DNA of 64,000 nucleotides. Source: Trichosphaerium sp. ATCC 40318. Lineage: Eukaryota > Protista > Tubulinea. The notes below the pieces were generated by a model. The model was not told where the DNA came from. It was given only the letters and a program-made list of their open reading frames with translations, and made no database searches. The stretch lies in assembly GCA_038496445.1 (NCBI GenBank), contig JALMLS010000466.1:744001-808000 (forward strand), written 5' to 3'. Positions within the stretch are counted from its first letter, which is position 1. Each line of letters opens with the position of its first letter. Shown piece after piece: positions 53,158 through 62,170 of this stretch. Position numbers and translations under genes: made by a program.

Positions 53158-56100
53158 TCAACGTGATAATGGGTACTCGTTTGAGGCTTCGATATCCTTA
53201 AGGATTTCCTTGAATGAAGGTCTCTTATCGTAAGACTGCCAAGACATTTTTGCAATCTTTGAGAGTATTGGGCTCACATCACGGGTCTACGAACAAGAGT
53301 GAGTTAAGTTCAAAAGTGTGAGGGTTTTTTTGATTTACCATTGGGAATGTTGGTCGTAGTGTGTCGTCTATTATAGCTGATTGTATCGCTCTCCTATTCC
53401 ATTCTTTCCGCATGGCTATGTTTTCTTCTTTATGAATGACATAGCCTGCTCGTTCGAGGTTCTCGATTTTCTGTTAAAGAAAAGAAAGGTTAAAAGTGAA
53501 GGCAGACTTGTAATGTTTTGTACTTGACCACAGTTAACAAGTGACATTGACGACACTGTATGAAATCTCTTATCGTCAAAGTACTCGTCAAATGGAAGTT
53601 TACTTGTCTCCAATTCATAGAGCACACAGCCAAACATGTATACATCGCTAGCAGTATTGTACGACTTTGAGTTTGGATCCAGAATTTCTACACAAAAAAG
53701 TCAAAATCAAAAGGAAAGGTTTTCTGATTTAAAAAAACGTACCTGGGGGTAGCCACTGCCAAGTGTTTAGGCGCTCTCTCATCTCTCCTGCTACAAACCG
53801 GGCAAGTCCAAAATCTGGAAAATGCGGTCAGTTACAGTTTTGAATAAAATTGATTAATATTTGCACTCTTGCGCAATCTTTTGCCCTTGTTATCAACAAA
53901 GGGTATTACTTGTAATTCAAGTTTTTTAGACGTACCACCGAGTTTAGCGATTGGATCATGGTCGCGAGGTCGATCAAGACGCCGAATAAACACGTTCGGA
54001 CTTAAACAAAGAGCGTTAATATAAACTTTTTCGATTATTTAAGAAAGTCGTACCTCCTCAAGTCTCTGTGCATGATTACTGGTGTATGACAGTGCAAGTA
54101 ATGCATGGCTTGTCCAATGTCATAAGCTATACGAACACGCATTTCGGGTGTTAGACTTCGCTCATCGTCGTGTAAGATCATATTCAATGACTTGTGTTTA
54201 ACAAGTTCCATAACCTATTTTTTCTGTTTTAGCAGACAATCTTGAAGGTAAACTTCTGTTATTCTTAACATACCATGCCGATGCGTGGTGATAAGCAGAT
54301 ACCATATAGCTTAACTAGATTTGGATGATCAAGTTGGGATTGAAGGTATGCCTTATGGAATGTCAGCACGTGTTGATTTAAAATAAAACACAAAGCGTGC
54401 CTCGTGATGGAATTCTCGCCACATGGCAACATTCCCTGCTATGTTTTTTATAGTTTTTACAGCAACATGACGTCCATCGTCCTTTGAAAAAGATTCCCAC
54501 ACATCACCATATCCACCTTCGCCGAGTTTTGCTACTTTTTCGATATTTTGTATAGTAGGTACATTCTAAAAAAACAGTGAGTCTTTTTTTGAATTGATTC
54601 TGCTGTACCTTTAAGATAATATCTGGCGCTAGCTCTACAAGAGGTACAGTAGCGCTTCCGTAATTACATTTCAATGAACTATCACTTGACATGAAGCTCT
54701 CAACAATGTCATTGTATAAATAAGTTGACCGTTTTGCAACTATGTGAAAAAAATTTAGGATGAAACAAAGCACTCTATGAACGAAACAAGGTTTTTCGTA
54801 CATCTATTTCCAAGGCAATGACCACAAATGACCTTCTCTGTTACATCCTCAGGATTCTAGCCAAGTATCAGAATGAAGAAACAACCTTATATTACTACGA
54901 TACCTTCTGGTAGTACAGTTGAACAACAGCATCAATAGTTGCTGTTAATCTTGCAAGCAATTGTGCTTGCTCTTCTTCAGACTGTGTCGCTGTATTTAAG
55001 TACAATCTAACAACATTCTTTTGTGTATCTTTATCGTATTCAAGCTCGATTATACCACGCTTAATGTACACGTTAGTTGTTTTAAAAATAGATTTATGAT
55101 GAAAAGTGTAACTAGTACGTACACTTTCAGCAAAGACAAAGGCGATGCCTTTTATCCATATACTTTGAGGGCGTAATTTAGGTAACATCATTGTTCTTAC
55201 TAGAAGTCTTGGGAAGAATGCATAGTTTAGCCATTTAGGAAACTCGTACTGACGTCCGAATATATGGCAATTAACCTACAAAATAAAATTTTGTCAATGT
55301 CGAAACAAATGGTGTGCCTTGTTCACAAACGAAAAGAGAAATTGTTGATTACCTCTCGTGGCTTTATAACTTCTCTTCTGAATGTTGTATATGCTTGTTG
55401 TGGGGTATCTGGAAGTAGTGAGGGTACAATAGCAACAGGTACTTTATCTTCATCATATACACCTTCAAGAGCATCCTCCTCCTGAGGCTCAACACGGAAT
55501 GTAATCTCAAAACGACAAAGTATATCCAAGAACAAGTTTAAGTACTCTTCTTTTTGAGCCTAAATTTTTCAAAAATCACGTGAGTTTGCGTACACGAGTA
55601 GCGTGAAAATAATTTTGAACGTTTTTGCTTTTATGACTTACCAGTTGACTTATTTTAAACATTGACTGTAAGTCATGGCTGTATATATAACCGTTCCTTC
55701 TTCGTTTTACAGATAAGTTCTTTTGTGTTATAATAACTGAAAAGACTTGACTCAAGAATTCAGGATTAAGGTAGACGTGATTCTTTAGTCCTTGTGAGTC
55801 TTTCCAATAAAGTAGAAATCCCATGTCATGTAGAACTTCCAGTGATTTCATCTTGAGGATATATATGAGTAAAGAAGGAACCAAAGGTTTACCGTACCAG
55901 ATCAGAATTATCAAGAACAAGACCAGAAGCAAACTACAGAAAGAACAAAATTAGAAAAATCACCACAAAAAAACTTTCACAAACATCACGTACCTCTTTG
56001 TGAAAGTTTTGAAGAGTTACAATTGGCTTTGATTCACGACCTTCTACTACTCTCGCTATGAGTTCTAGATATCTCTTTGGTACTTTGTGTCCTACAAGTT

Positions 56101-59100
56101 GCCTCTTCTTTGCAACAGAAACGATAGTATCTCGAAGTTTTTTGATCTTTTCAAGTTGTTTTATCTTTGCTTGTTTACGCTTTCTCTCAACATTAGAGAT
56201 ACAGAAAATCTCCTTTTCGCAGTTGTATAATGTCATTAAATTATTCAATTTACCCATAATGTGATCATGGAACGCTTTATTTTGACTGAACTTAGTCGCA
56301 TTGCAATGCGTGCCTAAAAAAAAAAGTAACTGTTAAAAAAAAATCACTTGAACTTAAACAGTTACTTACCAATGATGATTATAGGCGCAAATTTGAAACT
56401 ACTTCTAATAACACGTATCCAATAATGTGCGTCTTCTATAGTCTTCTCATCAGCAAGGTTCGCCACAACCAAGTAAAGTGCTCTACAAGACAAGTAAGAA
56501 AAAAAACCCATGTGTTTTCCATGAACACGTGGAAAGTGGTTTTGTCAAAAAACTGGTATGATAAAAATCCTAAGAAATCAAAGATGTACCTTTCTGATAG
56601 AAACAAGTTGTGTGTTCCTCTGTATAAGTTCTGTCCGGCAAAGTCATATGAATGTACAGTAACATCTTCAAAATCGAATTGTTGTATATCAATACCATCT
56701 GTAAGTACGCTGTGCTTTGCATTTGTACGTGTCTCGGGTGTTCCTCTCTTAAGAAATCTAGAAAGACTTGTTTTTCCGACATTTTCATGGCCAACAATCA
56801 TTAATTTAAATTCTGTACAAACAACTTCTTCTGTGCCTTTTCCAAGTTTCTAAATACTCGTTAATAAAACTTTGTTTATCGTTACATATACAAGGATACT
56901 CTTATACCACCATAACAATAACATAAAGAGTTGTACGCGTGTGTAAAGTCAGGTGAGCAAAGAGAGATTCTATGAAAAAAAGACGAGAAAAAAGTCATTG
57001 AAGTGCTTCGTACCTCCAAGTATTTCATGAACTTAGAGTGAGACTTAATGAGCTCTTGCATAACAACATTGAGAGGATTTCCTGATAACCATAAGGTAGT
57101 CAGACATGGCATTTCGGATAATTGATAAGGAACATCAATAATTGAATTATCTCTAAAGTCCATATTCATTAGTCCTTTACACTCAGCTATCTTTGGAGAT
57201 ATTGACATAATATCATTATCACGGCATATTAGTGTCTTAAGAGACTTGAGAACTGAAACTTCATCTGGAATTGAAGTAACACGATTCCTTGAAATATCCA
57301 AGAAAGTCAACTCTATTTCAGGCAAAAACTTCGATTAGCACTAATACAAGCGGGTTTTTGATTTGCGTACTTGATAGAACGTTTAATCCTGGGAAAGCAT
57401 GAAGTTTATTACAACGAAGTGAAAGCTTTTGTAAGTTGCATAAACATCCTTCAACAATGTGGACAACTCGAATCTAAAAATAAATCAATTAAAAAAAATC
57501 AAGTGCTCGAGCTGGGGAGTTGTCATCAACGGTTTTTTAAAGTACGCACGGCGTTGAAACTTAAGTCAAGAGATGTGATACCACCAAAGTAAACGAAATC
57601 TGAAGGTACAGTTGATAACATGTTACCTCTCAAATCAAGTGTTTTAAGAGATGTACACAAGTGCGATGTGTCTACTAATCTATGTGGTATTAGCCTATTT
57701 ATCCTATGGCCTATGATTCCAAGTTTTGCCAATTGTTTGCTTTCGAATACTGTGGAAGGAATAGAATCGAAAAAACGTGTGGTATTTGTGCCATCATGCC
57801 ACATATCAAGTTCCTACAAAAAAAAAAAATGAACAAAAAAATAAGTTGTCTTTTTTCATTGTTTCACACCTTGAGCTTAGGTGGTATCATTAATTGTGCG
57901 CTTTGCTTTATATTACGATTCATCAAAGTGGTTCTTAGTTGTGCAAAATGTGATGGCGAAGTAAGCTCGCTTGATACTAAAAGAACGGTAGTATAATCAC
58001 GACCAAAAATATTGGTTAAACAAAACAATACCTGCAATTTGTCTTAGACCAACTCCCTTGTTTACACAGGTTATCAAGTATTTAAAGTCCTTTGGTGGAA
58101 TGGATCTATTCATTGCGATAGATACGTTCTCAAGATCCAAGTAATTGATACCGCTATAATTCAGAAAATCAACTAAAAACCGGTGAATGATGATTTCTTG
58201 CCTGTTTGATGCTAAACCATTTGCAAGCTCTTTAAAGCCTTCTTCAGAAATGTTACAGTTCTTCATTATGAGTCTTCTCAATGACTTGAAACCTCCTCTA
58301 CGAATAGCTATACCAAGAGCAGATATACCAGCACCTAGATTATTACCACCTAATTCTAATACCCGTATATTCTTTCCTTTTAAGATAGGTATCAGATCCA
58401 AAAATTCTGTTTCACAAAACCCGTTAGTTATCACGTGTCACATGTTTTTTGTCTCTTTTCAAGGTATTTACCTTTAGACCACATGTAACCAACGCCTGGT
58501 GTAAATTTCTTTGGTAGGGATACCCAAGAAATGCAGTTATTCTCTTTAAATGCTTCTATAATTCTAGTATACATTGGTGCTTGTTTTGTTGTTTGCCATA
58601 GCCAAAAGTTTGGTTGTTGCGTTTGTAATGTGCGTAATAGTTCCTCAGAAAGAAGTGGAAGACATGGGTATTGATGTGTATGCATTAAACCGTTTTCAAA
58701 AACGCCATCACTAATGACAATGCCAACGCCACTTTTTTAATTCAAAAAAGTTAGTCAAACACAATCACAAATAGTTGTTGATATTATTACCTAATATCCC
58801 GAATTTCTATTGGAAAGTGTAATAAGGCCGTAGGGAACTTCTGAGAAGCAGCAAAGAAAGACATTTTGTGACCAAAGCGTAATATGAAGCTACCCTCTGG
58901 TGCGCCATTCATGAATATTGCCGATTCCTTTCTGTCTATTGGTCCTGTAATACTTTTAGTATGTTTGGTACCAAGTTGTTCAACTATAAATCATAGGCAG
59001 GCGATATGTACCATAGAAAATTGGATGGCGCATTAGAGAGAAAGAAAGAGGATGAACGAATACTTCGTTAAAATGTTGAACGAGTGTTTCGATATAAACA

Positions 59101-60741
59101 AATGATTCACGTCTGACATCTTTACGTGGTATATAGAAACCTCCACTCTCGGATCTTCTGACAATCGAATGCTGTGTATACTGTCCTATAAGAAAAATCA
59201 GTTTAGCATTCGCAAAATCCGCTAATGGCCCTTTGAAAGGGCGTTGGGACAGCGAAAGGGAATTCATCACAAAAGTCAAAACACGTAATTTGAAGTGAAC
59301 GTACCGCCATCAACCCATGATAAAACCATTTTTGTTTTTGTTGTAGATATACGAAACAAGTATGTGCTCGGTGCCCTTTTATTTAATAAATGTTTCGCGC
59401 TCTCTCTACCCATCTAATGTATTTTTCAGTTAGAAGTAACGTCATCAATTCTACTTTTTTCTTACCCAGCCTGTTGAAAAAAAAAGATTAGTAATCATTT
59501 ATTTCTACATGGAAGTAAAGTCCTACCTCCGAACCAAGGTAATTTTGCAAGTGATAGAACAGTAGGTATTACTTTATGCCTTGGTCCAAATAGCTTCACT
59601 AGTCGATTTACATGAGGTAACGCAACATACTCTCCTCCAAAAGCACAAAAAAAATATCTCATTGTCTAAAGAGATGAAATCGTCAATATCTTTTGTGCAC
59701 GTGATTCGGGTTTTACCCTTCCTTTTTTTTTTTTACCTGAAGAGCGAAATCGTTATCGCCGACATCCATGTGATTGCTCACAAGCTTCTTTACTACTTCC
59801 CAAGTGATACATATTTCATTATTATTCTCATACTCAAGTACTATCCTTTCCAATACAGCATCAGATCCTTCAGACGAACTATTGAAAAGAGCACTCTTCA
59901 AAGCAGATGTATGTTTTGCTGCGCTCAAAAACCACACTGTAAGTCCAGTGCTTGCTTCACATACTAAGCGCTACGTATTACAATGTTAGCAACAGCATAC
60001 TGACAAGTATAAGATATGTGATTTACGTACTGCTAGTATGCGATGTAAGGCGTAAACAGAAAAAACGTGATTAACATCTGAAGAGCTTTTGATCATTGCT
60101 AGGACTTGTTGGCCATTATTTGCTGCTCTAACTATACAACGTCTTCTATTGGCGACAAATTCTGGCGATATATGATAAGCAGAGTCTACCATAGCGTTAC
60201 GTATGCTCTGACCACTTCGTGTAAAGTCGATCTGAAAAGAGCGATTACTTTAAAAGTTGTCGTAAGCGATAGAATTTCAGTAGCCCAAAACTCAACCAAG
60301 AAAAGCACTACAAGCTTCTCTGCTTCATTCGTACCCTGTTAATGTTCAAATTCAACTTTATAACACTATATATCCAAGTAACAACTTCGTATACAACTGT
60401 ATCGGAGAGCCCAGGTAGAGGTTCTAAAAGAGTAATAAAAAACGGGCGTTAAATATGAAAACATATCACGTGTTCTGAAAAGGCGTATCCTTACCTAATA
60501 TCTGTGCTATTTCGCGATAGCACTTACGTGCATCCGATAAAGCTACTCCAGTATCTATAATGTTTGAAAGAACCTCATTACCATCACTAACACGAAGACG
60601 GTCTAGTTCAGCAGAAATACCAGCTACATCAGCTTTTGGGTTCTGTTGAAGTAAACTTTGTGCTCTGTTTCGAAAACTTGCCTGTAGCGTAGAGATAGTT
60701 TGGAAATTATCTTTACGCGACAGGGCCCGTTCATGTGCCAT
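53158..60741 (-). CDS. Roco kinase: helical N-terminus, tandem SH2, LRRs, Roc, COR, TKL kinase
   Basis: Roc GHENVGKTSL, TDGIDI, YDFAGQ, IIIGTH; COR VYLNPEFL; kinase HRDLRSPN, DFGLAR, WLPPE; SH2 YLFRIS and FILRFG. Confidence 0.9.
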
Positions 60742-60878: not shown

Positions 60879-62170
60879 TTAACTCTCTTCTTCAAACCCA
60901 TAGAAAGGCATAGATGGTCGCTGAAGCCTAAGGTAAAAAAAAGGTTATTCAAAATAAAAAAGAGAAATTTGTGATGTGCTTACCAGTTGTCTTTAGGCCA
61001 GTTTGTACCCTTGCCTTCAACGACGTGTATTGTGTATGCATGTCTGGGTCGCTTAGATAAATTCTTTTCGCTCATGTGTACAACATTACCATGAATCAGA
61101 ACCAAGGAACCTTTTAGTGCATAAGCGTTAAGACTCACGACAAAGAAAGATAAAGGATCTTATGTGTACCTTTTGATACAGGTGCTGACACAAAATCTTT
61201 TCTATCATACTCATCCCAAGATCCTCCATCCTTATTGTAAGGCGGTATAAACTCTACACCCTTACCATCAGCCGTTTTAACAAATCTATAAATAAACTAA
61301 GAAGGACGACAAAACCACTACACAAAAAAAAAAGAGTGTTGTGAAGAGATACCTTCTTTTTTTGTGAAGTCCTTTTTTATGTGATCCAGGTATAACCCAT
61401 AAACAAGCATTCTCTTCGTCTACATCATCTAACGCCCACCACCATGCAATACAAGATAAAAATGGTTCCGTATAAATAAAAGTATTGTCTTGGTGTGGTA
61501 CAGCTAAGAATAATTTAGCATGCGCCCGTTTAACGCAACGCTCACCTGCGCCTCCAATCTCAGGTTGCTTAAAAATATACATAGATTGAGCCACGTGAGG
61601 CTGAATCATGCCTAAATCCTTGGCCATAGTTGCCATGTACTGTTGATTTGTAAACTACACTGTTAGACATACGAGGAGCAGTGTAGTAGCCGTACTTGTT
61701 TGAATACTGGATCTAGCTCTCTCAATGCTACTTTGATTTAGATAACGATAGTGTATTACGCACATACCATGTCCTACTTTGCTTATAGAAAGGTGTTTGG
61801 GCCTTTTGAATTTGTTGTCTTCGTCTAGAGCTCCTTCTTCAAGAAAGAACCTAATTTTGTCTCCGCTATCAAGAAAATAGTCGTTGGTGGTTTTCTAAAT
61901 AACGTTAAAGGTGAATTTCAGTAAAAACGCTCGAGAGCTGGCCAAAATACCTCCTGAGAACGTCCAGTAGTAAAAATAGCGATATCTGAAGCGTCCCAGT
62001 CGTCAACGAGTTGTTTCATCCTGTTTTTCAGTTTTTCGACTTCTTCTAGAGGCACAGCGTTCTTAACAACCAAATAACCTTGGTGCACGCGTTAATGAGA
62101 ATAATCAATTATACAAATAACCACTACCATCATTGTTGAACTTCTCAATCTGTTCTTTAGTGAGCTTCAT
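60879..62170 (-). CDS. PHYHD1: Phytanoyl-CoA dioxygenase domain-containing protein 1
   Basis: [47 protein letters not shown] and RHAYTIH. Confidence 0.93.

Follow-up and report, generated by a model that had tools for sequence, protein, structure and literature searches.

The stretch of DNA analyzed here comprises 64,000 nucleotides of the draft genome of the amoebozoan Trichosphaerium sp. ATCC 40318 (contig JALMLS010000466.1, positions 744,001 to 808,000; C4:744001-808000 in the assembly scanned, which amounted to 70.3 Mb in 642 contigs) and is hereafter referred to as the window. It consists of AT-rich eukaryotic DNA with a GC content of ~0.33-0.41 in which short open pieces are numerous along the minus strand. 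On this strand, a single gene model extends over ~60741-53158, in which stop-free exons are linked in frame by short GT-AG introns. Both the window and the structure of this gene are consistent with the published statistics of the Trichosphaerium sp. draft genome (70.87 Mb with 37.7% GC; mean lengths of 75 bp for introns and 154 bp for exons; PMC10521059). Its predicted product starts with an orphan N-terminus of ~300 residues, which is followed by an SH2 domain, a linker of eight residues, a second SH2-like unit, leucine-rich repeats (LRRs) of the ribonuclease inhibitor (RI) type, ordinary LRRs, a Roc GTPase domain, a COR domain and, finally, a protein kinase domain of the TKL group. The presence of a tandem SH2 arrangement next to a Roco kinase on the minus strand of this window, which had been noticed previously from a reading of the sequence (hereafter, the original prediction), is real.

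The gene model was built from the stop-free pieces together with a listing of the frame-keeping GT..AG introns, and all homology searches were run exon by exon. The peptides quoted in the original prediction were recovered from the minus-strand translation, where they correspond to exon pieces joined by short in-frame GT-AG introns. Its further claim, namely that the SH2 pair is spliced in frame into RI-like LRRs and from there into an LRR-Roc-COR-kinase, was likewise borne out as one gene model, with the frame kept at the junctions. Exons 1-11 add up to 662 codons with phases that agree at every junction, and the chain after exon 11 runs on through LRR, Roc, COR and kinase exons up to a stop at 53158. 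The introns within 60741-58032 are 52-119 nt long, preserve the frame at every junction and all begin with GTA, and the splice signals were intact in each of the ten that were checked. Whereas the sequence shows which domains occur, in what sequence they follow one another and that the frame runs unbroken, we infer that the gene is spliced as modelled and expressed.

A CTRAY motif was present 16-23 nt before the AG in six of these ten introns (58407-60030), against a background of 0.003 per nt. The introns that bear it include both of those flanking the micro-exon described below and both of those tying the second SH2-like unit to the LRRs. This motif resembles the yeast branch point and may also be of help for gene modelling in the Trichosphaerium genome.

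With regard to the first SH2 domain (SH2-1), exon 59413-59305 alone matched the Pfam SH2 family (PF00017) with 20.4 bits (E 5.5e-4) over profile positions 7-47, the Pfam cut-off for the whole domain being 21 bits. When exon 59183-59013 was searched against the PDB, each of the top 15 matches was a Src-family SH2 domain, with alignments spanning betaD through alphaB; the matches were individually weak (E 0.17 and up) yet unanimous. An alignment of ten other SH2 domains from the same genome (A1) was used both as the source of a hidden Markov model (HMM) and as the target for hhalign. Here, SH2-1 reached an hhalign probability of 89%, and its betaB5 Arg aligned with the Arg that is invariant among the genome's SH2 domains. 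The A1 HMM was also run over the 1,534 stop-free pieces of the window; the SH2-1 exon ranked first (17.8 bits, E 2e-4) and the exon of the second SH2-like unit ranked second (12.8 bits, E 8e-3), with the next piece at 7.5 bits. The SH2 signal of both exons is above chance and, as far as profile and structure-database similarities can define a domain, the assignment of SH2-1 is solid.

The N-terminal edge of SH2-1 involves a putative micro-exon of five nucleotides, GCTGG (59470-59466, minus strand), on which the string 'WFGGWMGRESAK' of the original prediction depends. Exon 5 closes with the codons for Trp-Phe-Gly and one further base, the first of a Gly codon; the micro-exon would complete this Gly and add a Trp. 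A GTA donor, a CTRAY-type motif at -21/-20 and an AG acceptor were identified in each of the two flanking introns, 59526-59471 (56 nt) and 59465-59414 (52 nt). In addition, splicing in the micro-exon would fill positions 1-5 of the Pfam SH2 profile, the following exon beginning at profile position 6-7, and would bring the alphaA2 Arg to its proper position. The alternative is a single in-frame intron of 123 nt (59526-59404), which would lead to the reading 'WFGESAK' and to the loss of five residues, including the alphaA2 Arg. We prefer the micro-exon model over the 123-nt intron, because both flanking introns carry full splice signals and the spacing fits the SH2 profile.

The second SH2-like unit (SH2-2) begins eight residues past the end of SH2-1. 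The best PDB match of exon 58942-58793 was the SH2 domain of HSH2D, which aligned without gaps over 48 residues (E 0.073), and the alphaA2 Arg, the betaB5 Arg and the betaD4 His of SH2-2 were in register with both HSH2D and the SH2 profile of the genome; in the alignment with HSH2D, the betaB7 position was occupied by Gly, not Ser. The N-terminal half of SH2-2 matched A1 with an hhalign probability of 76% (E 2.3e-5). In a genome-wide search with the SH2-2 exon, the sole other match was a bona fide SH2 exon on contig C50. Between betaD of SH2-2 and the start of the LRRs lie ~36 residues, encoded by the first ~36 codons of exon 58731-58472. AlphaFold, applied to this 86-residue linker exon alone, returned a hairpin followed by a helix at the places expected of betaE-betaF and alphaB, with a pLDDT of 44; in view of this value, the model was rejected for fold search. 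Taken as a whole, SH2-2 probably forms a complete SH2 fold.

Beyond the SH2 units, the RI-type LRRs matched ribonuclease inhibitor (1.3e-6), NLRP14 and a designed RI-type LRR protein (1.8e-8) in the PDB. The best PDB matches of the Roc exon were a Roc-COR fragment of an archaeal Roco protein (1.3e-6) and the Roc domain of LRRK2, and this domain has kept both GxxxxGKT, the P-loop, and DxxG. Roc is followed by COR on successive exons of the same strand, as defines the Roco family, and the LRRs before Roc together with the TKL kinase after COR make the product an LRRK-type Roco kinase. The kinase exons, whose best PDB matches were CTR1, RIPK2, TNNI3K and LRRK2 (all of them of the TKL group), carry the Lys (VAVK), HRD and DFG motifs, and by these motifs the kinase looks active. 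No WD40 match was found after the kinase, where the frame ends at 53158, ~40 codons past the kinase exon, and in this respect the gene falls outside the LRRK2/Roco4 subtype; nor did Pfam report any ankyrin or armadillo match in any exon. The G4 motif of Roc, as read from the DNA across the junction 56370/56313, is Thr-His-Cys-Asn, with AAT as the Asn codon (56313-56302, minus strand). In Roco proteins this motif is usually THxD, and the change of Asp to Asn at G4 in engineered Ras-like GTPases shifts the preference from guanine to xanthine nucleotides.

The predicted C-terminus (53161-53190, minus strand) ends in Asn-Glu-Tyr-Pro-Leu-Ser-Arg, with a lone Tyr six residues from the end. As a speculation, this Tyr could be bound by the protein's own SH2 domains in the manner of the Src tail.

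Table 1. Features of the SH2-Roco kinase gene in the window, and other tandem SH2 sites in the genome.
Feature	Position	Strand	Description
Putative start codon	60739-60741	-	First ATG of open frame 60786-60469
N-terminal region	59537-60741	-	~300 codons without known domain; open frames, in-frame GTA..AG introns of 60-103 nt
Exon 1	60741-60495	-	N-terminal region
Exon 2	60423-60335	-	N-terminal region
Exon 3	60231-60031	-	N-terminal region
Exon 4	59970-59737	-	N-terminal region
Exon 5	59665-59527	-	N-terminal region (59665-59537) and start of SH2-1 (59536-59527)
Exon 6	59470-59466	-	Putative 5-nt micro-exon GCTGG, SH2-1
Exon 7	59413-59305	-	SH2-1, 36 codons
Exon 8	59185-59012	-	SH2-1 to 59046; SH2-2 from 59021
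Exon 9	58944-58791	-	SH2-2
Exon 10	58731-58472	-	SH2-2 to ~58623, then linker and first RI-type LRR
Exon 11	58406-58032	-	RI-type LRRs
SH2-1	59046-59536	-	Pieces 59536-59527, 59470-59466, 59413-59305 and 59185-59046
SH2-2	58623-59021	-	Pieces 59021-59012, 58944-58791 and 58731 to ~58623; support in the N-terminal half only
Linker and RI-type LRRs	58032-58622	-	End of exon 58731-58472 and exon 58406-58032; Pfam LRR_1, LRR_6
Ordinary LRRs	57014-57813	-	Pfam LRR_8, LRR_4, up to 46 bits
Roc GTPase domain	56270-56849	-	Pfam Roc, 39.7 bits (cut-off 27)
COR-A and COR-B	54898-55950	-	COR-A 37.2 bits (cut-off 35.3); COR-B weak, 16 bits
TKL-type protein kinase and stop codon	53158-54565	-	Pfam Pkinase and PK_Tyr_Ser-Thr on three exons
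Other tandem SH2 sites	C32:91088-91699; C178:99617-100076; C197:52934-53562; C50:37304-37894

At the 5' side, the N-terminal region had neither a Pfam match nor a paralogue in the genome. The upstream neighbour on the same strand (60980-61640, minus) is a spliced gene of the PhyH family (phytanoyl-CoA dioxygenase-like; exons with 68.6 and 27 bits, Pfam PF05721). Because this gene ends at 60980, leaving an intergenic gap of ~240 nt, the 5' end of the Roco gene is boxed in.

The genome as a whole contains at least 62 SH2 exon matches and at least four other tandem SH2 sites with paired matches within ~500 nt on one strand (Table 1), and therefore an SH2 signalling system is present in this organism. 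Roc and COR matches are also numerous, the nearest Roc match elsewhere in the genome showing 47% identity over 67 residues. No other SH2 match in the genome shared a strand with a Roc or COR match lying 10 kb or less away. Similarly, when 20 COR-bearing loci were scanned with the SH2 HMM, no match exceeded 10 bits in the 10-kb stretches covered, the N-terminal side of seven minus-strand loci falling outside this coverage. The original prediction named no precedent for an SH2-SH2 Roco protein, and our literature search found no paper pairing SH2 with Roc-COR in one protein. We regard the gene as a real and probably new variant of the Roco family. Since the genome is rich in both SH2 domains and Roco genes, the fusion most likely originated from lineage-specific domain shuffling.

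On balance, we favour the interpretation that the locus represents one intron-rich amoebozoan gene for an LRRK-type LRR-Roc-COR-kinase equipped with an orphan N-terminal region and two closely spaced SH2 domains, with the SH2 pair recruiting or unlocking the kinase. A series of results weighs against this interpretation. Regarding the two phosphotyrosine-pocket positions that the original prediction had claimed for both SH2 domains, an Arg could be aligned at betaB5 in either domain and at alphaA2 in SH2-2, whereas the alphaA2 Arg of SH2-1 is kept only if the 5-nt micro-exon is spliced in. Normal GTP binding by Roc is uncertain given the Asn at G4, which could be an assembly error. No transcript or protein model of the gene was found, and the linker exon had no true relative, nor a copy of its own, among 1.84 billion representative proteins. 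A word search with the RI-type LRR exon, which covers only proteins of 80-255 residues and is silent on long relatives, returned nothing. Finally, none of the seven exons searched across the genome had an orthologue or a close paralogue, and for this reason conservation is unusable as evidence. Two matches of the linker exon to giant repeat proteins, which were made up of summed weak matches (one of these proteins with bacterial Ig-like and SdrD domains), were rejected, given that BLAST showed no real similarity.

The doubts about SH2-2 belong to the same series and can also be read in another way, namely as one Roco kinase in which only SH2-1 reads phosphotyrosine, while the other is an SH2 domain that has degenerated or been remodelled and persists as a pseudo-SH2 or a spacer. 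Pfam gave no SH2 match for exon 58990-58790 at E<=1, the betaB7 position holds Gly in place of Ser, and the C-terminal half of SH2-2 showed no SH2 signal in PDB, hhalign or atlas searches, tests that have low power here; the atlas search with the linker exon yielded only low-score bacterial hypothetical proteins, which were rejected. However, this silence is weak evidence, because the same tests perform poorly on the genuine SH2-1: hhalign of exons of the C-terminal half against small alignments of SH2 domains from the genome fails even there, and therefore has no power, and the PDB search of the second half of SH2-1 was likewise only weak. Moreover, an ungapped alignment with a solved SH2 domain covers the N-terminal half of SH2-2 and has all three signature residues in register, its exon ranked second among the pieces of the window, and the residues that remain before the LRRs are predicted, at low confidence, to adopt the hairpin-then-helix order. 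We therefore consider the loss of phosphotyrosine reading by the second unit somewhat unlikely. The lack of any transcript would also be compatible with the SH2 and Roco regions being two separate genes or transcripts, and retention of intron 58471-58407 would indeed introduce a stop 13 codons on and produce an SH2-only protein. Nevertheless, the gap in question is just 65 nt (58471-58407); it opens with the donor GTAAAT, closes with a CAG acceptor preceded by CTAAC at -21, and keeps the frame. The LRR exon lacks a start codon of its own close to its 5' end, its earliest in-frame ATG lying deep within the repeats. In addition, the linker exon, which joins SH2-2 to the LRRs, already reads like the first RI-type repeat at its end and stays open over 86 codons in a genome with frequent stops. 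Taken together, a separation into two genes is highly unlikely. According to a last reading, the gene arose by exon shuffling and is recent, unexpressed or decaying, amounting to a pseudogene without function. Such an origin would suit a singleton without relatives or expression evidence, with a deviating Roc G4 motif, in a genome rich in both parent families; against it, all modelled exons can be read without invoking a frameshift or an in-frame stop, the kinase has kept its Lys, HRD and DFG motifs intact and Roc its P-loop and DxxG, and the splice signals of all ten introns checked are intact as well, which makes this reading very improbable indeed. In summary, the layout put forward in the original prediction holds as a single gene model, and no paper on an SH2-Roco protein came to light; by contrast, its tandem of SH2 domains stands for SH2-1 and for the N-terminal half of SH2-2, the C-terminal half being without signal, and its alphaA2 Arg of SH2-1 is tied to the micro-exon.

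Several known systems resemble the favoured single-gene SH2-Roco kinase in part. Human LRRK1 and LRRK2 and Dictyostelium Roco4 share with it the order LRR, Roc, COR-A/COR-B and TKL kinase, from which the amoeba gene differs by its N-terminal SH2 pair, its block of RI-type LRRs, the absence of WD40 repeats after the kinase and a G4 motif ending in Asn. The amoebozoan SH2-TKL kinases (Dictyostelium Shk1-5 and the Shk-like proteins of Acanthamoeba) also combine SH2 with a TKL-group kinase on one chain; however, they have a single SH2 domain and no LRR-Roc-COR between SH2 and kinase, whereas the two SH2 units here lie far upstream of a Roco-type kinase. Dictyostelium LrrB is an SH2 and LRR protein of an amoebozoan which is not known to carry Roc-COR or a kinase. 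Two SH2 units on one chain are also found in SHP2, ZAP-70/Syk, PI3K p85 and PLC-gamma, a likeness of layout only; in SHP2 and PLC-gamma, the spacer between the SH2 domains is short, like the eight-residue spacer observed here. The output in the amoeba is a Roc-COR-kinase rather than a phosphatase, a tyrosine kinase or a lipid enzyme, and no orthology to these tandem-SH2 proteins was detectable. The Pfam searches encountered no PTP, tyrosine kinase or iSH2 domain of the SHP2, Syk or p85 families, the other domains found being LRR, Roc, COR and TKL kinase only. According to the supplement text of the Acanthamoeba study, this amoeba has 48 SH2 proteins, of which three are tandem and 28 are Shk-like SH2-TKL kinases, and many of its other SH2 proteins are fused to regulators of small GTPases; that text mentions no Roco fusion (PMC4053784).

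As for the function of the SH2 pair, we propose, on the basis of the domain content, that it would bind phosphotyrosine motifs on a partner, which might be a tyrosine-phosphorylating kinase of the receptor type or of the TKL group, or else the scaffold of such a kinase, and that this binding would recruit or unlock the Roc-COR-kinase. The same recruitment logic exists in trans in mammals, where LRRK1 reaches the activated EGF receptor via the SH2 adaptor Grb2 (PMC3105304). As in this mammalian complex, the Roco kinase of the amoeba would be linked by SH2 to a tyrosine-phosphorylated partner. While in mammals the SH2 domain belongs to a separate adaptor, which contacts LRRK1 by means of an SH3 domain, in the amoeba it lies within the Roco chain, and a single chain might do what LRRK1 does with the aid of Grb2. 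A more far-reaching version would make this the first natural protein in which a tandem-SH2 reader and a Roc-COR GTPase-kinase share one chain and tyrosine phosphorylation directly gates an LRRK-type switch, possibly by recruitment to doubly phosphorylated motifs or through an intramolecular clamp of the Src or SHP2 type; we regard this version as unlikely.

The value of the finding is limited because it concerns a single gene, for which neither conservation nor expression has yet been seen, in one species that has been little studied, and as a probable Roco variant the fusion is of moderate interest. The amoeba kinase belongs to the family of LRRK2, the Parkinson's disease kinase. How upstream signals switch on Roco kinases such as LRRK2 and LRRK1 is a matter of ongoing work, with recruitment to membranes or receptors as a leading idea, and a natural SH2-Roco kinase fusion, if true, would offer a simple and testable case of recruitment-driven control. 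It would also extend amoebozoan phosphotyrosine signalling to Roco GTPases, beyond the RhoGAP, RhoGEF and RasGEF proteins and the Shk kinases reported for Acanthamoeba.

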